DNA of 64,000 nucleotides, from sequence record NC_047815.1; one strand, given 5' to 3'. Positions 6,334 through 61,291 of the stretch are shown here, one piece after another. The translations under genes and the position numbers were made by a program. Position 1 is the stretch's first letter. Every line of letters starts with the position of its first letter. The notes under the pieces are model-generated. The model had not been told where the DNA came from. It saw only the letters and a list, made by a program, of their open reading frames with translations, and searched no databases.

Positions 6334-6364
6334 CTGCTTGTTCTCGGTTGCTTCTCATGCTTGT

Positions 6365-6373
6365 TATTTACAG
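6365..6373 (-). promoter_or_regulatory. CTGTAAATA promoter-like motif
   Basis: Intergenic, upstream of 6333. Confidence 0.55.
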
Positions 6374-6421
6374 ATTCTGTTGAGACTGAGAGGCCTAAGC
6401 AAGACCTCTCATGAAACAAGA

Positions 6422-11078: not shown

Positions 11079-11340
11079 CTTTTTTCTCTGTTATGAATTG
11101 TAACTGACCTTCGATATTTACAGCTTTAATCGACTGTCCTGTGGAGGCGAATAGTCCATTCAACACTCCGAGAAAATCTGCAACGCAACAGCCTGATGAT
11201 GTGCTGAATACGTCAATGTCTGGCGGCACATCGCCTGGGTTAAGCTGCCAGCAAGTACGCAAGACAGCTAACACAAAGTCAGGACGATGCACCAAGTGCG
11301 TGTTGAGAAAGTCACACGCTTGCTCGGTGCTTATTGTCAA
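11047..11340 (-). CDS. Hypothetical 97-aa protein
   Basis: Overlaps the polymerase stop and the clamp start. Confidence 0.6.
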   Translation of the reverse strand: MTISTEQACDFLNTHLVHRPDFVLAVLRTCWQLNPGDVPPDIDVFSTSSGCCVADFLGVLNGLFASTGQSIKAVNIEGQLQFITEKKDEEMPTSQKD

Positions 11341-14300: not shown

Positions 14301-14498
14301 GAACACAGCACCAGTCGTGCCGCTGAATATCTTACCGTTTTCTAAATCTTCTGACGGCATGTGGTCAAGAATAAACAATGCCTTGCCGCCCTTATTCGTC
14401 TTGCTCGTGCCTTTAAGCACACGAACAAAATCGTAACTCTGCACGTCGGAAAATGACTTAGGCAGATCAAAGTCTAGTGCCAAATGTTTTGTCTTCAC
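11337..14498 (-). CDS. Family A DNA polymerase with N-terminal UDG-like domain and 3'-5' exonuclease (1053 aa)
   Basis: ExoI AVDTETE, ExoII NAKFD, ExoIII YAGLD; TGRTSASDPNLQQVP; motif A DYSAHEVR; motif B RNAVKTVIFGLIY; motif C VHDS; GTG start. Confidence 0.95.
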   Translation of the reverse strand: MKTKHLALDFDLPKSFSDVQSYDFVRVLKGTSKTNKGGKALFILDHMPSEDLENGKIFSGTTGAVFLNQIQYLEDVFPLKTTIDDWNFLVVSYNMFKTYEKSEQYKSDAAEAFSQRIRDMIVEYKPDYVMTFGTEPFKALNADKINYSGGLAHNWYGVEIPTSLKTKNGKHKFVHVPNVSYNAVLNPRNIKGTSYTLGYMSRWMLPMFQKGMPYRIPQVTCGKNRNWNLKYVTTIKGVEKVLRMMKKAKKVAVDTETENLNRIKNKLMTVQLSSDGKTAYVIPIYHRDSPFSPKELRKISDLMRDYFEENQNKYQIYVNAKFDLNVLRSNFGIRSYAANVWDIQAGEFAFDENAKNLMTLFGHGYYNLANLAMQYGTTVYYDVTFGKEKRATIADVDLDESVQEYAGLDVIVPFLIAEQQVKRAKDIKYAKYNSMVSEQISDQIHAFSIMETTGAMADIDYLFKLNLPNSPINEEIKNVERDFLNSPEVKAANKAILVDDDVPKFGLMGRVEVTKFDMSKNEHKQVLFFDVMKLKPLKEGEKKRDNGKPTGKLDKDFQEAYKDVPLVSLYNKLGKAYKLKNAYVNSLLRLWGESEDFKHDRSIRPTYSYLGVVTGRTSASDPNLQQVPSRSELGKLIKRILIARPGRLLIKVDYSAHEVRGWSIISGDAEVAEVFEVGRRLRHRYRTVPDPWIHHLVDIEGDVHKINASYFFGVPIMEVTKPIRNAVKTVIFGLIYQQGDKGLAKSTGREVEEIADIKAKFLKRFPIGLKWFEKIKRFAHEHYYVESPVGRRRHLWGFMVPESHREANMVHAACDRRAVNSPVQGFGSDLMMSAIRILDRMKYEYWKANGKYPDFALNVSVHDSLTVDCAYDWIFLALDMIERAMTSAVVQIVKERHGFEFTSVPEIDFEIGASEKDVGGWDFSYAKLRKLIQKGLEQKRDELGEKDLDVEQVLDSIMENQYSLMSDWMKKQLWANNIKIRSMDKVNPLTKLDQKNIKQWHRELPDNTAKYEAFEAEERAKKAAAATAVSAPAKKKIKIPKSIVKKAVRGYLN

Positions 14499-14541
14499 AC
14501 AGTAAGCCCTTATGTTCGGTGTGAGATATAAATCACATTTG

Positions 14542-14550
14542 TATTTACAG
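14542..14550 (-). promoter_or_regulatory. CTGTAAATA promoter-like motif upstream of the polymerase
   Basis: Intergenic exact copy. Confidence 0.55.
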
Positions 14551-14572
14551 TTTCCAAACTGTATGGGAATAG

Positions 14573-14601
14573 AAAAAGGGATAGCCTAAGCCATCCCTTT
14601 A
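14573..14601 (-). terminator. Intrinsic terminator with cUUAGg loop
   Basis: AAAAGGGAUGGC-UUAG-GCUAUCCCUUUU on minus. Confidence 0.75.
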
Positions 14602-14606
14602 GAGTG

Positions 14607-29234: not shown

Positions 29235-29272
29235 GGTAGTCCTCGTCAGTGTGAGAATATGAATACTCGATG

Positions 29273-29279
29273 AAATTAG
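29273..29279 (-). promoter_or_regulatory. CTAATTT promoter-like motif
   Basis: 39 nt upstream of 29234. Confidence 0.5.
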
Positions 29280-29317
29280 CGTTTAGGTCGGGATATTCAT
29301 GGATTATGTACTGTGTG

Positions 29318-29325
29318 TATTTACA
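29318..29325 (-). promoter_or_regulatory. TGTAAATA promoter-like motif
   Basis: Intergenic, in tandem with CTAATTT. Confidence 0.45.
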
Positions 29326-29345
29326 AATATTCTGACCTAAGACGT

Positions 29346-29378
29346 AAAAAAGGACAGCCGAAGCCGTCCTTTTTTTTT
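29346..29378 (-). terminator. Strong intrinsic terminator (cUUCGg) with U-runs on both sides
   Basis: AAAAAAAGGACAGCCGAAGCCGTCCTTTTTTTT. Confidence 0.85.
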
Positions 29379-29403
29379 GTTTCATGCTCGATCAGTCAGC
29401 GAC

Positions 29404-31271: not shown

Positions 31272-31301
31272 AACAGTGCTCTTGTTGTTTCTGATGGTCG
31301 T

Positions 31302-31310
31302 TATTTACAG
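31302..31310 (-). promoter_or_regulatory. CTGTAAATA promoter-like motif upstream of sbcD
   Basis: Intergenic exact copy directly after a terminator. Confidence 0.55.
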
Positions 31311-31336
31311 AAAAGGGCAGCCTAAGCCACCCTTTT
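31311..31336 (-). terminator. Intrinsic terminator with cUUAGg loop
   Basis: AAAAGGGUGGC-UUAG-GCUGCCCUUUU. Confidence 0.75.
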
Positions 31337-31338
31337 AT

Positions 31339-43124: not shown

Positions 43125-43167
43125 ATGTATACCTAATTCTGTTTAGTTGAGCAAGTTCTATACTGGT

Positions 43168-43176
43168 TATTTACAG
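43168..43176 (-). promoter_or_regulatory. CTGTAAATA promoter-like motif heading the sbcC operon
   Basis: Intergenic exact copy. Confidence 0.55.
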
Positions 43177-43191
43177 AATTTTCTCAGCCAG

Positions 43192-43223
43192 AAACAGAAA
43201 AGGGCGGCCCGTTAAGGCTGCCC
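43192..43223 (-). terminator. Intrinsic terminator
   Basis: GGGCGGCC-CGTTAA-GGCTGCCC hairpin with U-tail on minus. Confidence 0.65.
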
Positions 43224-44642: not shown

Positions 44643-45935
44643 TTAGTCCTTAGACCGCTTCTTTTTCTTCTTCACTTTCTTTTCAGACTTATCTGCATCA
44701 GTGTCAAACGGTACTACTTCCACACTCATCTTGCCGCTGTAGAGATCTGCCATAAGAGTTGTGACTAAACTCTCCAACATAATATCTGCTGGCACACTGG
44801 TATTGTTGAATGCTACTTCGGCGTCGGCAAGTGCTCGCTGCAAATAGATCAATCGAACGGGATTAACTTCAATCTTGTTCTGCTTGGCCATCGCAAGAAA
44901 CATCTTGAGTCCTGCTGTTTGCCACTTGTTCGTTTCGGCCATGTGACCGATGATGCCATGAATAACCCAACGTGCTTTCATCACAATCGCACGAGGATTA
45001 TTTGCTTCACGAAGGAACTGGATAACAGCTATCAAGTCCATATCCAGATAAGCACCAATCATGGAAACTGCTTTCGCTTCCATTTCGATTTCTGGATCGG
45101 CTGACGCAAGCTCGTTGACAAGTTCCTTATCAAACTTCTCACCACCAACAACTGACGAGTAGATTGTCTGCAACATGCCGATAGCACCACGCATCTGACC
45201 ACCAGCATACTCTGCTACTTGCTGAATAGCATCAGTGGCGCGATCAAGTGCTTTGTCTTTCTTAGGCAAGATGCCTTCTGTGTCTGCAATCTCTGTCAGA
45301 CGCTTGGCAATCACGTCTACTTTGATTGGCTGAATCGGAAGATTAGTAGCACGACTAACAATGGTCGGCTTCATCTTCTCTGGGTTCGTTGTAACAAAGA
45401 TCCACACAGTATGTTCTGGCGGTTCTTCTGTTGTCACAAGAAACTTGGATTCAGCTTGAGGACTCATGAGGTGTGCTTCGTCAAGAATAAACACACGACG
45501 CTTAAACATCGGACTGAGTGTTGCGCTGTCAATGATCTTTTGACTGCCATCAACTTTACCGTGGTCGCCACCCATATCATACTGCATGATATCAGGATGT
45601 GCATCTTTACCCATGTCCGCCATACGACATGACTGACACTTACCACAAGCACTAAACGAATCGCAGTTGATGTACTTGGCAATCAGACGAGCAAACGTTG
45701 TCTTGCCTGATCCATAATGACCAGTAACAAGAATGGTTGCAGGCACGATGCCGCTCTTTGTCCAACCACGAAAGATCTTAACGATGTGATCTTGACCCAC
45801 GTAATCAGCAATAACACGCGGACGATATTTCGCTGCGAAGTTTACTGTGGTCAGTTTAACAACTTCGGTAGATTCACCTTTCTTCTTCTTTTTAGGTTCA
45901 TCATCACCGAAACTGCGTTTTTTAACTTTTGCCAT
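44643..45935 (-). CDS. dnaX: Clamp loader ATPase, DNA pol III gamma/tau-like (430 aa)
   Basis: AAKYRP..DYVGQ.H, GHYGSGKTT.ARL.AK..NC, CGKCQSC zinc module, VFILDEAH, EEPP.H, SRA arginine finger. Confidence 0.92.
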   Translation of the reverse strand: MAKVKKRSFGDDEPKKKKKGESTEVVKLTTVNFAAKYRPRVIADYVGQDHIVKIFRGWTKSGIVPATILVTGHYGSGKTTFARLIAKYINCDSFSACGKCQSCRMADMGKDAHPDIMQYDMGGDHGKVDGSQKIIDSATLSPMFKRRVFILDEAHLMSPQAESKFLVTTEEPPEHTVWIFVTTNPEKMKPTIVSRATNLPIQPIKVDVIAKRLTEIADTEGILPKKDKALDRATDAIQQVAEYAGGQMRGAIGMLQTIYSSVVGGEKFDKELVNELASADPEIEMEAKAVSMIGAYLDMDLIAVIQFLREANNPRAIVMKARWVIHGIIGHMAETNKWQTAGLKMFLAMAKQNKIEVNPVRLIYLQRALADAEVAFNNTSVPADIMLESLVTTLMADLYSGKMSVEVVPFDTDADKSEKKVKKKKKRSKD

Positions 45936-45968
45936 TGTATGCCCTATTTAGTATATGCTCTCGTATGA

Positions 45969-45977
45969 TATTTACAG
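45969..45977 (-). promoter_or_regulatory. CTGTAAATA promoter-like motif upstream of dnaX
   Basis: Intergenic exact copy. Confidence 0.55.
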
Positions 45978-45995
45978 ATTTTAAGTCCTCAGACG

Positions 45996-46029
45996 AAAAA
46001 ATGGGACAGACCAAATCCATGGCTGTCCC
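45996..46029 (-). terminator. Intrinsic terminator
   Basis: GGGACAG...CTGTCCC with U-run on minus. Confidence 0.6.
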
Positions 46030-46112
46030 TGTATAAAATGTTTACATTCAATGAGCAATAAAGACACAATCCTAGGAAAATCCTAGAGGGCATTCACAGT
46101 GGCAACAGTGAA

Positions 46113-46316: not shown

Positions 46317-46374
46317 TTTAATCTCCCACAGAAGGGACCAACATTGATCCCTGCTTTTTAACTTTGCTGCTCTA

Positions 46375-46383
46375 TATTTACAG
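46375..46383 (-). promoter_or_regulatory. CTGTAAATA promoter-like motif
   Basis: Intergenic exact copy. Confidence 0.55.
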
Positions 46384-46414
46384 AAACAACAAACTTCTGG
46401 GCGTGAGACTATTC

Positions 46415-46738
46415 TTATTTTTTCTCAATCTCTGAAATCTTGGCTTCAAGGCGATTGGTCAGCGAATCAATCACAGACTTGACACCATTAACGATTGAGA
46501 CTATCTCGGTGTGTTGTTGCTGTATCGAGGCAACAGCAGCACCAACAGTTTGTGCCTGTTCTGTGATAGTTTCAGCGCCATTACGAATCTTGGTAACGTG
46601 CTGATCGAGTTCTGAATTGACCTGATCAACATAACGTTGCGATTCGTTTGGATGACGCTTAGTCCACCACACGCCAAATGCAAAGCACAAGGCACCAAAC
46701 ACAATCATAGCAATTAACCAAAGGAAGTTGTTTCCCAT
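46415..46738 (-). CDS. 107-aa protein with N-terminal membrane anchor and coiled coil
   Basis: Start reassigned to MGNNFLWLIAMIVFGALCFAFGVWW after GGAG; heptad-like C-part. Confidence 0.75.
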   Translation of the reverse strand: MGNNFLWLIAMIVFGALCFAFGVWWTKRHPNESQRYVDQVNSELDQHVTKIRNGAETITEQAQTVGAAVASIQQQHTEIVSIVNGVKSVIDSLTNRLEAKISEIEKK

Positions 46739-46766
46739 ACCATATCTCCAAAAATAGTGTTGATTG

Positions 46767-47243
46767 GAGCGTACCGCAACTAGAACTCGGTAAGCACCGT
46801 ATGTCCTGTTGTAGTTTGTACAGGACTCCAATACACACTTGCGAGAATATGTATTGGAGTCCACTCGGCGAGCAACGCGAGAAGCAACCGAGTGTTCTCC
46901 CCCTCAGATTAAGGCGCGTAGAGGGATTCGCGCCCGAGAGAGTCTTACACCTAAATGTTGTATCGCAGACGACGGCACAGGTAGCGTCTGTTGGCATCTG
47001 CATACAACGAGGTTGCTCTGCTCTTGTCCGCATGACGGTGCGGACGCGGCAGCAGGCAGTTGACCTGAAGAGACAGTTCGAGGAAACCAACTGCCTGCTG
47101 CAAACTCTCACTCATAAGCCCTTTAACAACGCGAACCGTGAGAGTATGAATTGGTTGCGGTGTACAGTTGCTCGTAAAAAGGAGAGAGACCAGAGGGAAA
47201 TCCAGTCTCTCTCAAACGTGCAGAAGCAAACTCCCTATGCTTC
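46767..47243 (-). ncRNA. Putative large structured non-coding RNA or highly structured leader, family unknown
   Basis: About ten helices of 6-17 bp, a long-range closing helix (46767-46780 with 47154-47173), an H-type pseudoknot at 46901-46934, and G-U wobbles that favour the minus strand. Confidence 0.6.
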
Positions 47244-47258
47244 ACTTGTTACGCTATT

Positions 47259-47265
47259 TAATTAG
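47259..47265 (-). promoter_or_regulatory. CTAATT(A) variant motif upstream of the structured element
   Basis: Shares the 10-mer CTCACTAATT with the motif at 56040. Confidence 0.4.
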
Positions 47266-47306
47266 TGAGTTTTGATGGATCTACTAAGAAAATTCTTATG
47301 AATTTT

Positions 47307-47885
47307 TTAGGCCATCTTGAGAAACAGTTGCATTGCGTTTAAAGTCCTAAAGAACTCATCACGTTCAAAACTACTGATACGGAAGGGGTGGTCGATGTGC
47401 GTGTTCCAGAACTGAGTGCGCAACAAGACGTTAGACGCAAGGGGTTCAGCACTGTCGAACACTGGCTTATCATCTACCAGAATAAATTTATCGTGACCGA
47501 ACTGTTCACGAAGGTAGGTCAGCTTGTTGTTGTGTGTCTTGGGATCAATAACATGAATGGTTTCGAAGTGGTGACGAATACGATGATGCTCTAAACTGAT
47601 CAACGTTTCCTTGCGACCATCAGCATGATAACCACGATGGGTGCAAATGGTTAGACGATAACCTCTGTCACGCAGCAAGTCCAACGTGTTTGCTACAAAA
47701 GGCATCAAGTTCAATTGACGCATAAACTTGGCGTCGTCCAACAACTCAAGGAAGTGTGGACCGCCGTTGACTGTTGTAATATAATGACCTTGACAATCAA
47801 TGCCACGACTTTTTAATTGCTGATCAAAATAATGATAAGTCGCAAACGCTGTATCGTCAAGGTCAATCACTATATCTTGTATCAT
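47307..47885 (-). CDS. HAD-superfamily 5'(3')-deoxyribonucleotidase-like hydrolase (192 aa)
   Basis: IVIDLDDT motif I, ICTHRG motif II, LVDDKP motif IV. Confidence 0.8.
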   Translation of the reverse strand: MIQDIVIDLDDTAFATYHYFDQQLKSRGIDCQGHYITTVNGGPHFLELLDDAKFMRQLNLMPFVANTLDLLRDRGYRLTICTHRGYHADGRKETLISLEHHRIRHHFETIHVIDPKTHNNKLTYLREQFGHDKFILVDDKPVFDSAEPLASNVLLRTQFWNTHIDHPFRISSFERDEFFRTLNAMQLFLKMA

Positions 47886-50000: not shown

Positions 50001-50531
50001 TCACTTTTCTTTACGGACATCGGCTGTTACCTCACGCGGTAAGTGGCAGGAAGAAACGCAGCTAGCACACCAACTTCCTGAAGTGCAGGACAGACTGGAA
50101 ACTATTGGTTGATGATGATCGTCAAGAACAATAATCAACTGTTCGAACCAATGGTCAGTATCATGCATTGCCAACTCAAGCGCGGCAATGTCATAGCTGG
50201 TGGCTATCTGTCGATCTATAACAACGTATTGTGGGCGACTGCTTGATGCAATATCACCAGCAATCTGACCCACACCCAAACCTTTAGGAACAATGTATCG
50301 TTCAATCTCTGCCGTGACTTCGCGTTCGTCTCGGGTGATCATTGTTAGTTCAAAACCAAATGCTTGCATACGTTCAACGAACACGTGGTCGAAGATTCTA
50401 AAAACAGAACGGTCAACGGACACGTCTACTACAGATATACCAAGTGGGCGATCTACGCGGACTGTTGCGCGAAAGCCTTCTACTTGGGAGAAACTCGAAA
50501 TCAGAGCATTAACGATATGGGCTTTATACAA
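50001..50531 (-). CDS. Hypothetical 176-aa protein
   Basis: TTG start; Cys-rich C-end. Confidence 0.6.
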   Translation of the reverse strand: MYKAHIVNALISSFSQVEGFRATVRVDRPLGISVVDVSVDRSVFRIFDHVFVERMQAFGFELTMITRDEREVTAEIERYIVPKGLGVGQIAGDIASSSRPQYVVIDRQIATSYDIAALELAMHDTDHWFEQLIIVLDDHHQPIVSSLSCTSGSWCASCVSSCHLPREVTADVRKEK

Positions 50532-50580
50532 GGTGTTGTTGTCTCACTAAGAGGAAAAATGAATCAATATATTATTGGTA

Positions 50581-50727
50581 TTATTCGTCGTCGGGATCAA
50601 CGCCGACTTTGCGGCAGAACTCGTCGAACTCTTCTTCGGACATTGTTTCCATAGCTTTGTTACGAACAATGTCCCAATGCTCTTCGGTTAATGAACGAAG
50701 AAACATCAACTCATCTTCATTAAACAT
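50581..50727 (-). CDS. 48-aa acidic mini-protein (below the track cutoff)
   Basis: GGAG + ATG: MFNEDELMFLRSLTEEHWDIVRNKAMETMSEEEFDEFCRKVGVDPDDE. Confidence 0.7.
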   Translation of the reverse strand: MFNEDELMFLRSLTEEHWDIVRNKAMETMSEEEFDEFCRKVGVDPDDE

Positions 50728-50729
50728 AG

Positions 50730-53710: not shown

Positions 53711-53740
53711 CAATACTCGCTTTTGCTCTTTCTTGTTGGT

Positions 53741-53748
53741 TATTTACA
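53741..53748 (-). promoter_or_regulatory. TGTAAATA promoter-like motif
   Basis: Upstream of 53710. Confidence 0.5.
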
Positions 53749-54210
53749 CTTTCCTTGCAGATAACCAACTATAGGGAGTATCAATACGGTATAAGTCTCT
53801 ACTTCTAGCTCTCTCAACCATCATCATATCAGGCATATATCAGTCAGATCAGCGTGAGCATGAGCCACTTTGGGTCACAATAAATAGCAAAATCAGACCG
53901 AGTAGAATCGCACGCTGGTAGCTTCTAACATAGCCGATAGGTGCATAGAATTCAAATCCATGCAAAAAATGAATTATATAGCAAATCGTGTCCGCAATAA
54001 GGTATTTCGATCCGCGCTATACCTGTGGAGCGTATAGGGACACCGCTGGTCGATAATCGTAAGGTTGAGAATTGCTAAAAACAGCTAAAAATCGACGATT
54101 TCTCAGGGATTGCAATTCTAATCGCCTGACGGGCGCCTACAAGCATGTCCTGCGGGCGCCTAAAATCCATGATTTTCAGACAAATCTCACCGTATTTTCA
54201 ACGGCGAAGA
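53749..54210. other. Long non-coding region with direct and inverted repeats (origin or packaging-site candidate)
   Basis: AAATCG-A-CGATTT palindrome 54089-54101; CGGGCGCCTA at 54130 and 54153; GCTAAAAA twice (54074, 54084); AGAATTGC/GCAATTCT inverted pair. Confidence 0.35.
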
Positions 54211-54903
54211 CTATTTTTTACGGCTAACAACCTGATTCAGCTTTTTGCCTATCTGATTAAAGATACGCTGAACCGTTTCACCGTCGTGATTTTTAATCGC
54301 CAGTGCAAGCTGTTCACCCTGTTCACGGCTCAATTCTGGCATAACCAGCTTCAACATCTGACTGCGCATCTTAGCTGATGGGCTTTTACCACGCGATTCG
54401 CTGGCCATCATAGTTGTAGCAGGCACACCGGCACGCTGTTGGTCTTCCACAGGAGTAGCTTCTGCGCCGGAAGGACGATTCACAATGCGACTAGGGTAAT
54501 CACCGCGTAGGATAGCAGCCAAACGCTCGCCCAGAGGTGCAAACAGCCGTTCAAATTCAGTTTTAGGCTGCCAGCTCTCGTCGCTGCTGTAGGTAAACAC
54601 ATCTTCGGTCATGATACGACCCTGTTTGCCTTCAACAGCCTTAACAGCCTGCTCACGACCTACCTGCTGCTCATCGTCAGTCTTTTTCAACTGGACAACA
54701 GCACGAGAACGCTTAGGTGCCACATAGCTGCGATTGTCTTCTCCCAGAACCTTGCCTGTCAAGCGGCTTTCATCGCCCATACCACGTACAGGAATATCTT
54801 CAACCGGCTCAGCCTCGTTTGTATGATCCACTGTTGCCTTTGTGAAATTGCCGCGCTGCACACGATATTCGCGGCTTTCGCTCAAGTTAATTTTTAGCTT
54901 CAT
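54211..54903 (-). CDS. Hypothetical 230-aa protein (MKLKINLSESR...)
   Basis: Start reassigned to the ATG after GAGGG, just downstream of the upstream gene's stop. Confidence 0.75.
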   Translation of the reverse strand: MKLKINLSESREYRVQRGNFTKATVDHTNEAEPVEDIPVRGMGDESRLTGKVLGEDNRSYVAPKRSRAVVQLKKTDDEQQVGREQAVKAVEGKQGRIMTEDVFTYSSDESWQPKTEFERLFAPLGERLAAILRGDYPSRIVNRPSGAEATPVEDQQRAGVPATTMMASESRGKSPSAKMRSQMLKLVMPELSREQGEQLALAIKNHDGETVQRIFNQIGKKLNQVVSRKK

Positions 54904-54911
54904 GTTGCCCT

Positions 54912-61222: not shown

Positions 61223-61238
61223 ATTGTCACCCGTTTGT

Positions 61239-61245
61239 CTAATTT
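61239..61245 (+). promoter_or_regulatory. CTAATTT motif (plus strand)
   Basis: 46 nt upstream of 61292. Confidence 0.5.
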
Positions 61246-61265
61246 AAACATGTACACTTAGGCGA

Positions 61266-61274
61266 TATTTACAG
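61266..61274 (-). promoter_or_regulatory. CTGTAAATA motif upstream of primase
   Basis: Exact copy in the divergent intergenic region. Confidence 0.55.
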
Positions 61275-61291
61275 TATTAGGAGCTGACACT

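Follow-up and report, generated by a model that had tools for sequence, protein, structure and literature searches.

The question raised by the locus described here is what occupies a 568-bp gap (46739-47306) between two genes of Erwinia phage vB_EamM_Yoloswag (KY448244), where all surrounding genes lie on the minus strand. The window analyzed, a stretch of 64,000 nucleotides from sequence record NC_047815.1, is numbered such that window position equals record position − 124000. An earlier reading of the letters (hereafter, the sequence-only reading) had proposed that the gap encodes a new, large structured RNA with an H-type pseudoknot on the minus strand, and this core inference is supported by covariation among relatives as well as by negative searches of Rfam. 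That the element is a real structured RNA of a family outside Rfam is, in our judgment, very probable. To the fuller statement, that the gap holds a stand-alone, trans-acting structured noncoding RNA (ncRNA) gene, we assign a rough probability of 0.55. We place it, as a new and apparently undescribed RNA family, among the large structured ncRNAs of phages, a category that is itself only loosely known.

The gap is a clear folding outlier within the window. Its minus-strand RNA has a minimum free energy of -213.6 kcal/mol, compared with -161.6±6.8 kcal/mol in dinucleotide shuffles (z -7.6), while the plus strand scores z -7.1; an independent recomputation returned z -9.2 (minus) and -8.0 (plus). 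Eight other gaps of the window that are poor in open reading frames (ORFs) range from z +1.1 to -3.2, and the elements of relatives reach z -8.7 (pEa_SNUABM_5) and -5.0 (JA13). Nearly all of the helices with which the sequence-only reading had tiled the gap were found where it placed them, and the shuffled-sequence comparison that it had named as a possible refutation came out in favor of structure by a wide margin (z -7.6 to -9.2). Elsewhere in the window, four stretches of 360-800 bp lack an ATG-initiated ORF of at least 60 amino acids (985-1786, 50370-50729, 53711-54144 and 54379-54911). As their folding scores are unremarkable (z +1.1 to -2.6), they do not resemble further structured RNAs.

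Comparative evidence begins with the distribution of the element, which is kept at a syntenic site that follows the HAD gene and precedes the clamp-loader gene, in approximately 55 deposited jumbo-phage genomes (Erwinia, Dickeya, Yersinia). These fall into four sub-lineages: Yoloswag/Rivsvirus, Alexandravirus/Y3/AD1, Yersinia fHe-Yen9-02, and the Dickeya JA-type. A blastn search of GenBank phages with the Yoloswag sequence gave a sole relative, the syntenic copy of Erwinia phage pEa_SNUABM_5 (73% identity; four Yoloswag/SNUABM_5 records), to which a metagenomic contig of Yoloswag type, L007, was added from IMG/VR. This search missed the Alexandra-type homologues, which were found only via synteny and the alignment of gaps: 14 further jumbo phages, with clamp loaders ~70% identical, have an ORF-free gap of ~470 bp between the HAD gene and a gene for 65-67 amino acids, with no 107-aa gene, and alignment of their gaps revealed a shorter homologue with element order unchanged. 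With an Alexandra-type query, blastn recovered 46 GenBank records (Alexandravirus, Sasquatchvirus Y3, the pEa_SNUABM_7 group and Dickeya phage AD1), none of which annotates anything over the element. Clamp-loader synteny also exposed more remote copies, one in Yersinia phage fHe-Yen9-02 and others in the Dickeya phages JA11, JA13 and JA29, and a looser pattern run on IMG/VR yielded 14 new loci, three of which were confirmed by a covariance model as JA11, JA29 and the JA-like contig L063. Long conserved-block patterns scanned against IMG/VR and JGI metagenomes returned the same genomes again, plus contig L035; 185,579 genomes of bacteria and archaea, scanned with a pattern, gave no match; and in the Pseudomonas relatives Lu11, PaBG and HRDY3 the locus is densely coding, with no match there. 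As far as these searches reach, the family is restricted to those members of this jumbo-phage group that form its enterobacterial branch.

The L035 sequence (Ga0335397_10000069, from a GC-rich bacterium) is the sole match to GTAAGACTCTCTC..ATCCCTC outside the family. It lies at 810-895, in the 5' untranslated region (UTR) of a gene for an HlyD-like efflux adaptor, and the shared sequences CTTAA and GGGGAGA, similarly spaced and directly ahead of the ATG, extend the resemblance beyond the searched pattern. The match is probably due to chance, with ~13 random matches expected.

Among the copies, RNA length falls from ~430 nt in Yoloswag to 230-345 nt in relatives, the smallest, JA-type copies being ~215-230 nt. 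The RNA is conserved to an extent equal to or above that of neighboring protein genes: over three within-lineage pairs, nucleotide identity is 70-73% for the RNA vs 55-67% for the HAD gene.

Pairing in these copies is maintained by compensatory changes beyond what controls produce, which is the generic mark of a structured ncRNA, and the examination of syntenic regions that had been suggested for this purpose found such changes in abundance. The structure was curated on 19 distinct Alexandra-type sequences, aligned with MAFFT, in which 94.5% of cells form standard pairs. Both sides have changed in 31/101 pairs, while column shuffles give 16.3±2.3 (0/500 reach 31) and sliding the 3' partner by 1-3 columns leaves 3-10 compensatory pairs; the covariation score is 0.216 vs 0.128. 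In this consensus, helix P0 closes a three-way junction with P1, whose loop is UA-N-GGAGUU, and PT, a GC-rich hairpin followed by C and U6-12. Of the next helices, P2 is a short hairpin, P3 has UAACACCGCGUUA as its loop, and P4 is long, with the apical sequence GCUACCUG and a 3' bulge, GUAAGA. P5 forms the H-type pseudoknot, followed by single-stranded GGGGAGAA, P6 has the loop GACCGUCAUC, and P7 is an 18-bp hairpin. P3 and P4, which are homologous to P3 and P4 of Yoloswag, covary within these 19 sequences. In Erwinia phage pEp_SNUABM_52 (L049, within 175-547), the invariant P3 loop is the exact site of a 10-nt tandem duplication, GTAACACCGC GTAACACCGC; Y3, a close relative, carries the sequence only once.

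A covariance model of the 3' domain only, built from Alexandra-type sequences only, finds exactly one match per genome and always on the gene strand; the RNA is single-copy. In Yoloswag the match covers 46823-46948 on the minus strand (54.1 bits, E 4.8e-13), and the remaining scores are 60.5 bits in SNUABM_5, 51.7 in L007, 44 in JA13, 32.1 in the Yersinia phage and 32.9 in L063. Across 22 sequences 20/35 pairs of the 3' domain are compensatory (covariation 0.332 vs 0.155), in an alignment that is model-fitted and leans towards structure. Even the base of P7 covaries in distant members, from AAUA/UAUU to AAUG/CAUU in the Yersinia phage and AAAG/CUUU in JA13. P0 remains complementary in three lineages despite wholly different sequence, being CGUAACAAG/CUUUUUACG in Yoloswag, GUACAAAA/UUUUGUAC in Alexandra-type copies and CAUUG/CAGUG in the Yersinia phage. 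The central domain is shortened in JA-type phages.

The best-supported single feature is the H-type pseudoknot, which the sequence-only reading had drawn at 46913-34 with GAGGG and which is fully complementary in every genome through eight variants. All 6/6 pairs hold in each of 20 sequences, where five strand variants occur, and three more variants are found in the Yersinia phage, JA13 and L063 (UCCCUC/GAGGGG, CCGUGU/ACACGG, CCGUGC/GCACGG, CCUGCA/UGCAGG, CCGCAC/GUGCGG, CCUCU/AGAGG, CCCGC/GCGGG and CCCAC/GUGGG in all). Pairs of this helix have changed on both sides at 4/6 positions in the 19-sequence alignment and at 5/6 in the 22-sequence alignment.

The transcribed strand is, by computational inference, the gene (minus) strand. 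It had been observed in Yoloswag that the wobbles work only on the minus strand, and this extends to relatives, whose curated pairs comprise 160 G-U vs 17 A-C cells, a count somewhat biased by derivation of the structure on the same strand. An unbiased check, consensus folding, agrees with the count: the energy is -89.3 kcal/mol on the gene strand vs -44.3 kcal/mol on its complement (A3), and -40.0 vs -19.3 kcal/mol (A8). These data also bear on the view that the signal is not one of RNA at all and reflects a DNA structure (cruciforms or a protein-binding inverted repeat), a decayed gene or chance palindromes. Both strands do fold well (plus z -7.1), the 11-bp base of P7 is a nearly invariant, operator-like inverted repeat, and GenBank records place small ORFs in the region. 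However, the G-U/A-C asymmetry and a consensus energy twice as good on the gene strand are at odds with such a view, as are helix tops that covary and change length with pairing kept, and eight covarying pseudoknot variants would be meaningless in duplex DNA. Duplex-DNA features do not account for the pseudoknot and the strand-specific wobbles, and we consider a non-RNA origin of the signal extremely improbable.

Nor are the annotated ORFs conserved. Across copies no ORF is shared, those present vary between genomes in strand, frame and presence, and JA-type copies contain no ORF of at least 25 amino acids. Three records carry three mutually incompatible small coding sequences (CDSs) inside the element (46951-47115 of the window, minus strand; L002 4131-4256, plus strand; L055 1833-2039), all of which are probably spurious. 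At the site of the first of these, gp204, the sequences of SNUABM_5 and L007 have ATT as start codon and a frame broken by 5-nt and 7-nt indels. A further candidate, a small ORF after GGGGAG (TTG start, 35 amino acids, 46780-46887), was rejected as it is frame-shifted in relatives.

Conservation also sets the boundaries of the RNA (Table 1), running from the box CACTAATTAAAT to the foot of P7 (46823). The extent first proposed, 46767-47243 (~480 nt), is therefore to be revised: the conserved RNA runs from ~47253 to 46823, or ~430 nt, on the minus strand. A long-range helix, 46767-80 with 47154-73, had been taken to close the structure; it is present in Yoloswag but conserved in no relative, and the true closing helix of the 5' domain is P0. 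The same applies to the small hairpin 46803-09/46820-26, which had been paired with 46823-62 as a possible switch and which, although present in Yoloswag, is conserved in no relative. Because 46767-46822 is lineage-specific, so are both the closing helix and the switch. This hairpin and a Shine-Dalgarno GGAG (46746-49) fall in the spacer that follows the RNA, as does the 3' arm of the helix that had been taken to close the structure; the spacer has diverged fully in SNUABM_5 and L007, and has no counterpart in other lineages. The proposed loop-junction pairing 46870-76/47012-18 (GUUGCUC/GAGCAAC) is present, and invariant within its sub-lineage.

Several other pairings were considered and set aside. 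The RNAalifold helix CUCUCUC/GAGGGGG is kept only within the Yoloswag type, the pseudoknot being conserved instead; pairing of the P1 loop (GGAGU) with the 5' strand of P7 (ACUCC) shows no covariation; and competition of the PT-loop UCCCUCU for GAGGGG is possible only in Yoloswag- and Yersinia-type copies. A 9-nt identity of the 5' end of the RNA (CGUAACAAG) to 16S rRNA is at chance expectation and absent in other lineages.

Table 1. Features of the locus in window coordinates, in the order of transcription of the gene strand, followed by copies of two recurrent boxes elsewhere in the window.
Feature	Position	Strand	Remarks
HAD gene	47307-47885	minus	192 aa; upstream of gap
B box, promoter-like	47256-47267	minus	CACTAATTAAAT; invariant in three Yoloswag-type sequences
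5' domain, three-way junction P0/P1/PT	47173-47253	minus	compensatory changes in P1 and PT
P0	47245-53 / 47173-81	minus	sequence differs by lineage, complementarity kept
P1	47238-43 / 47223-28	minus	loop UAGGGAGUU
PT	47201-13 / 47182-94	minus	13-bp GC-rich hairpin, then C and U5; intrinsic-terminator-like
Central domain	46956-47159	minus	in three Yoloswag-type sequences, P3, P4 and the variable hairpin have compensatory changes
Invariant junction CGCAACCAAUUCAU	47146-59	minus	central domain
P2	47138-45 / 47104-11	minus	central domain
Perfect 14-bp hairpin	47088-101 / 47049-62	minus	lineage-specific
YOLOSWAG_203 / gp204 CDS	46951-47115	minus	54 aa, inside the RNA; probably spurious
P3	47039-45 / 47026-32	minus	loop CCGUCA
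Junction GAGCAGAGCAACCU	47010-23	minus	central domain
P4	46995-47009 / 46956-71	minus	invariant apical GCUACCUG
Universal 3' domain	46823-46948	minus	~125 nt; covariance-model match, 20/35 pairs compensatory
GUAAGAC bulge	46942-48	minus	3' domain
P5	46929-35 / 46912-18	minus	stem of H-type pseudoknot
Pseudoknot helix	loop UCCCUC 46921-26 with GAGGGG 46900-05	minus	eight complementary variants among relatives
Single-stranded GGAGAA	~46894-46901	minus	overlaps 3' end of pseudoknot strand, since 5 bp and 6 bp are both possible readings of the pseudoknot
P6	46888-94 / 46862-68	minus	hairpin with conserved loop
P7	46846-62 / 46823-39	minus	17 bp; base ACUCCAA/UUGGAGU nearly invariant
Spacer	46739-46822	minus	between RNA and ATG of 107-aa gene; non-conserved
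Membrane/coiled-coil gene	46415-46738	minus	107 aa; N-terminal membrane helix and coiled coil; downstream of gap
Clamp-loader gene	44643-45935	minus	Pfam DNA_pol3_delta2, E 2e-28; beyond the 107-aa and 67-aa genes
TAATTT hexamers (starts)	56046, 49849, 44577, 38660, 30179, 29279, 6830, 4663, 3506, 1024	minus	
Box A sites	6334-6421, 11079-11336, 14361-14606, 29235-29403, 31272-31338, 43125-43211, 45936-46112, 46317-46414, 53711-54144, 61223-61291	minus	

The novelty of the family was assessed against Rfam 15 (4227 models, among them tmRNA, RNase P, group I/II introns, riboswitches, GOLLD, ROOL, OLE, HEARO, raiA, CsrB/Rsm and self-cleaving ribozymes), which at gathering score gave 0 matches on the whole window and 0 on the loci of three relatives. 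Permissive scans of the element from Yoloswag, AD1 and JA13 returned unrelated matches only (E at least 0.047), far under gathering and with no family in common. The sequence-only reading had seen no hallmarks of tmRNA, RNase P, tRNA or group I introns, in agreement with these scans and with ARAGORN, which reports 0 tRNA/tmRNA genes in the 64-kb window; the Rfam search that it suggested leaves novelty standing. Guide RNAs of the retron, DRT, IscB or TnpB type were rejected as candidates, with no reverse transcriptase or nuclease gene nearby. No description of the element was found in the full-text literature on these phages and on jumbo-phage structured RNAs. The main text of a 2023 catalogue of candidate viral structured RNAs contains no Erwinia or jumbo phages, although the catalogue could include the element anonymously (PMC10690425).

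Whether the RNA is a gene in its own right depends on where its transcription would start and stop. The CTAATT motif noted upstream in the sequence-only reading is a plausible promoter, as it belongs to a recurrent intergenic box: of the copies of this box B, C-TAATT(T/A), on the gene strand of the window, 11-12/19 are intergenic, several just after terminator hairpins. In Yoloswag 5 nt separate the upstream hexamer TAATTA from the base at which pairing in the RNA begins (P0), box B holds this distance to the first P0 base in every lineage that has it, and an equivalent, TTTCTAATTT, is kept in 19 Alexandra-type sequences, JA13 and L063. Box B, which sometimes reads TGC-TAATTT, like an extended -10, is probably a further promoter class. 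Another intergenic box on the gene strand, box A (CTGTAAATA), equals CTGTAAATAG, the 'putative middle/late promoter' of the Lu11 record, and probably serves this phage group as its middle/late promoter. In the form (C)TGTAAATA(A/T)C it stands upstream of many genes, and it resembles the T4 late promoter, TATAAATA. The phage group has been reported to encode sigma factors and no RNA polymerase (PMC7412058), such that transcription by the host core polymerase, which obeys intrinsic terminators, is to be expected. No transcriptome of these phages came up in the literature searched.

Two kinds of terminator-like hairpin occur. PT of Yoloswag has 13 pairs (6 G-C), a 6-nt loop and CTTTTT, and is the top site of a terminator scan; like the Alexandra-type copies (U6-12), it has the sequence of an intrinsic terminator. 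In the three non-JA lineages PT lies inside the 5' domain, with its U-run drawn into P0; we take it for an integral arm at which some of the transcripts may also end. JA13 and L063 show the succession box B, an RNA of ~215 nt, a spacer of ~45 nt, a strong intrinsic terminator, box A (CTGTAAAT) and the clamp-loader gene. Their terminators have different hairpin sequences at the same position, ending in U9 (JA13) and U7 (L063), and the RNA ahead of them holds P1, then a short region that resembles P4 and includes GUAAGAC, and after it the pseudoknot, P6 and P7. This layout reads as the anatomy of a self-contained RNA gene.

The same arrangement may, however, be read in cis. The sequence-only reading had offered a new ncRNA class or a complex leader/attenuator as alternatives, and under the latter the RNA would be a long 5' UTR of the downstream replication genes (small protein, clamp loader, SbcC-like nuclease), controlling read-through of PT or of the JA-type 3' terminator, or else translation, in the manner of a riboswitch or of processive antitermination. 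A promoter-like box followed within ~50-130 nt by a terminator-like hairpin and U-run, as seen in Yoloswag-, Alexandra- and Yersinia-type copies, is what such a leader would show, and the sequence of box, structured RNA, ~45-nt spacer, terminator and genes in JA13/L063 is a classic riboswitch layout. Moreover, outside the JA-type no obvious terminator follows P7, so read-through is likely, and an upstream A-tract has two alternative pairing partners, a U-rich linker ahead of PT and the U-run behind it.

Against this, a large conserved domain lies 3' of PT in three lineages, which leaves no room for sensing before the termination decision, and the terminator moves from a position 5' of the core in these lineages to one 3' of it in the JA-type. 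The gene 3' of the RNA is a 107-aa membrane protein, a 65-67-aa protein or the clamp loader, depending on lineage; neither a constant class of downstream gene nor a sensor placed before its platform, as in riboswitches and attenuators, was found. Alexandra- and JA-type phages have a separate CTGTAAAT box between the RNA and the next gene, no start codon is conserved after GGGGAG, and no alternative pairing with the core is backed by covariation. As the downstream gene varies, and as JA-type copies have a terminator and a separate promoter box before the next gene, the leader half of the alternative is weakened while the ncRNA half is supported. We consider a leader unlikely, if still worth bearing in mind.

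Two lines of evidence lead us to favor an independent, trans-acting RNA. Firstly, the downstream gene varies, and a promoter box (joined in the JA-type by a terminator) insulates the RNA from it. Secondly, unpaired nucleotides of the 3' domain (GUAAGAC, GGGGAG, the CCGUCA-type loop), together with the P7 base, are invariant while the helices drift. Invariant unpaired nucleotides among drifting helices form a pattern suggestive of a binding surface or active site. On this basis, host RNA polymerase would transcribe the RNA from the phage box C-TAATT, and the product, probably no leader of the next gene, would act in trans and as RNA, offering its invariant loops to a partner that is a protein or a ribonucleoprotein. 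The GGGGAG and ANGGAG elements, both Shine-Dalgarno-like, would be displayed to this partner as well, with the RNA serving as a scaffold or decoy during infection. The GGGGAG segment and the A-N-GGA-G loop of P1 suggest translation or RsmA/CsrA as partner, although this is only a lead.

Several observations weigh against this reading. GGA motifs are not enriched and JA-type P1 is without the motif, which weakens the RsmA/CsrA lead. Promoter, 5' end and 3' end have all been placed from sequence, and trans action and protein binding follow only from architecture and the invariant loops. In 3/4 lineages a terminator-like hairpin with a U-run occurs ~50-130 nt after the presumed start, and with PT so early, a partial stop of host-polymerase transcription before the conserved core would be expected. 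Outside the JA-type, no clear terminator was seen after P7, which leaves room for read-through into the next gene and, with it, for a cis role. Finally, no partner gene was found, the adjacent deoxyribonucleotidase-like HAD gene having no visible link to RNA.

An active site, as opposed to a binding surface, would make the pseudoknotted 3' domain a ribozyme or RNA-processing element, for example a self-cleaving one that sets the ends of operon transcripts. Its size and the many invariant unpaired nucleotides beside covarying helices and a pseudoknot are typical ribozyme features. Small self-cleaving ribozymes are common in phages, and this too speaks in general terms for the possibility, while the 3' terminator missing from most lineages would be accounted for if the 3' end arose by cleavage. 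Permissive searches nevertheless gave no match to hammerhead, twister, pistol, hatchet, HDV-like, glmS, group I/II or RNase P models, the pseudoknot is a simple H-type without the nested double pseudoknots of HDV or glmS, and no sequence pointer to a cleavage site was noted. Catalysis of this kind seems to us decidedly improbable.

The genes on either side offer some context. In each of the RNA-bearing genomes examined, the HAD gene directly precedes the RNA. Its protein falls below Pfam thresholds and is assigned to PHROG 415, labelled 'polynucleotide kinase'; the AlphaFold model (predicted local distance difference test, pLDDT, 93) is a capped HAD-fold phosphatase whose nearest solved structures are 5'(3')-deoxyribonucleotidases (3bwv, 1q92). 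The gene was thus named correctly in the sequence-only reading, and we rejected the PHROG label, and with it a link to RNA repair, as unsupported by the deoxyribonucleotidase-like fold. Downstream, the 107-aa gene occurs only in Yoloswag, pEa_SNUABM_5 and contig L007 (30-32% amino-acid identity), is missing in relatives of the Alexandra, Y3, JA and Yersinia types and has no promoter box of its own; being confined to these three, it is a lineage-specific insertion just 3' of the RNA. Each end of the clamp-loader protein carries a run of lysines (KKKKK near residue 15; KKVKKKKKRSKD at the C-terminus), and the N-terminal run is also found in the JA-like contig L063.

Proximity to the clamp-loader gene, within a replication/recombination cluster, raises the further possibility of a replication-origin transcript, that is, a structured primer or R-loop RNA by analogy with ColE1 RNA II or T4 oriF/oriG. 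In ColE1 RNA II a G-rich segment anchors the transcript to its template, and the promoter-like box and invariant G-run GGGGAG recall this arrangement. The 5' domain bears a weak resemblance to a plasmid countertranscript, ctRNA_pT181 (25.6 bits, below the gathering score of 56; E 0.33), probably a generic one of two hairpins and a terminator. On the same side, the phage clade uses a Pol I-type polymerase (PMC7412058). Yet the locus shows no GC-skew inflection, no AT-rich unwinding element and no iterons, the G-run is partly paired in the pseudoknot, and Lu11, PaBG and HRDY3 share the replication genes without having the element at this locus. We regard a role in origin function as very improbable.

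On a bolder reading, in which the element is a new class of large phage RNA with tertiary structure, one version would have GGGGAG and ANGGAG, held on a rigid scaffold, capture a host factor (30S/S1, RsmA/CsrA or a defense nuclease) and so reprogram the cell in infection. Should the RNA act on a host factor, jumbo phages would have a takeover tool of a new kind; should it instead prove to be a cis element, it would be an unusually elaborate one. To our knowledge, bacterial or phage RNAs longer than ~300 nt with so much conserved, tertiary-looking structure are rare, and most such large RNAs solved so far are ribozymes, ribonucleoprotein cores or self-assembling particles. The element is nonetheless unannotated, or mis-annotated as small hypothetical proteins, in ~55 deposited jumbo-phage genomes, and several of the phages that bear it are under development for fire-blight biocontrol. 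The comparative data amount to a testable model, comprising boundaries, strand, eight pseudoknot variants and a minimal natural version in the Dickeya JA-type.

Comparison with known systems places the element closer to some than to others. It resembles ColE1 RNA II and countertranscripts in being a several-hundred-nt structured transcript beside replication functions, with a G-run, and differs in having neither origin features, skew inflection nor an antisense partner. The translational operator of T4 gene 32 likewise places an H-type pseudoknot directly upstream of a purine-rich, Shine-Dalgarno-like single strand; here, no conserved start codon or ORF follows 3', the downstream gene is distant and varies by lineage, and the pseudoknot sits inside a much larger conserved RNA. 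Intrinsic terminators are matched by PT in every sequence feature, with a promoter-like box ahead, and JA-type copies end at a canonical terminator. In attenuators, by contrast, conserved structure precedes the terminator, while here covarying P0 encloses PT in three lineages and ~300 nt of conserved structure come after PT, not before; the layout matches no known attenuator.

Erwinia, Dickeya and Yersinia hosts use RsmA/CsrA, and the P1 loop A-N-GGA-G (N variable) and the invariant single-stranded GGGGAG resemble CsrA sites and Shine-Dalgarno sequences, which invites comparison with CsrB/RsmB. However, the element exposes 2-3 GGA, in contrast to ~18-22 in CsrB, JA-type P1 is without a GGAG loop, Rfam gives no CsrB/RsmB/RsmY/RsmZ match, and the pseudoknotted core is unlike sponge RNAs. 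As GGA motifs are not enriched (~6 in 431 nt vs ~6.7 expected by chance), a sponge of the CsrB type is not indicated.

GOLLD and ROOL (RF01998, RF03087) differ from the element in length (~580-800 nt vs 230-430 nt) and show no match to it in sequence or structure. The element belongs to one enterobacterial jumbo-phage clade and is not beside tRNA genes, of which the 64-kb window has none; GOLLD and ROOL are known to form multimeric cages. The likeness is one of kind: all are phage-encoded, several hundred nucleotides long, rich in helices and pseudoknotted, with invariant loops beside covarying stems, and all are apparently stand-alone genes whose function cannot be read from sequence. It is on this likeness that we would tentatively suggest, as a possibility short of our favored reading, that the element may prove to be a new class comparable in standing to ROOL, GOLLD and OLE, with a 3' domain that is catalytic or a ribonucleoprotein core.

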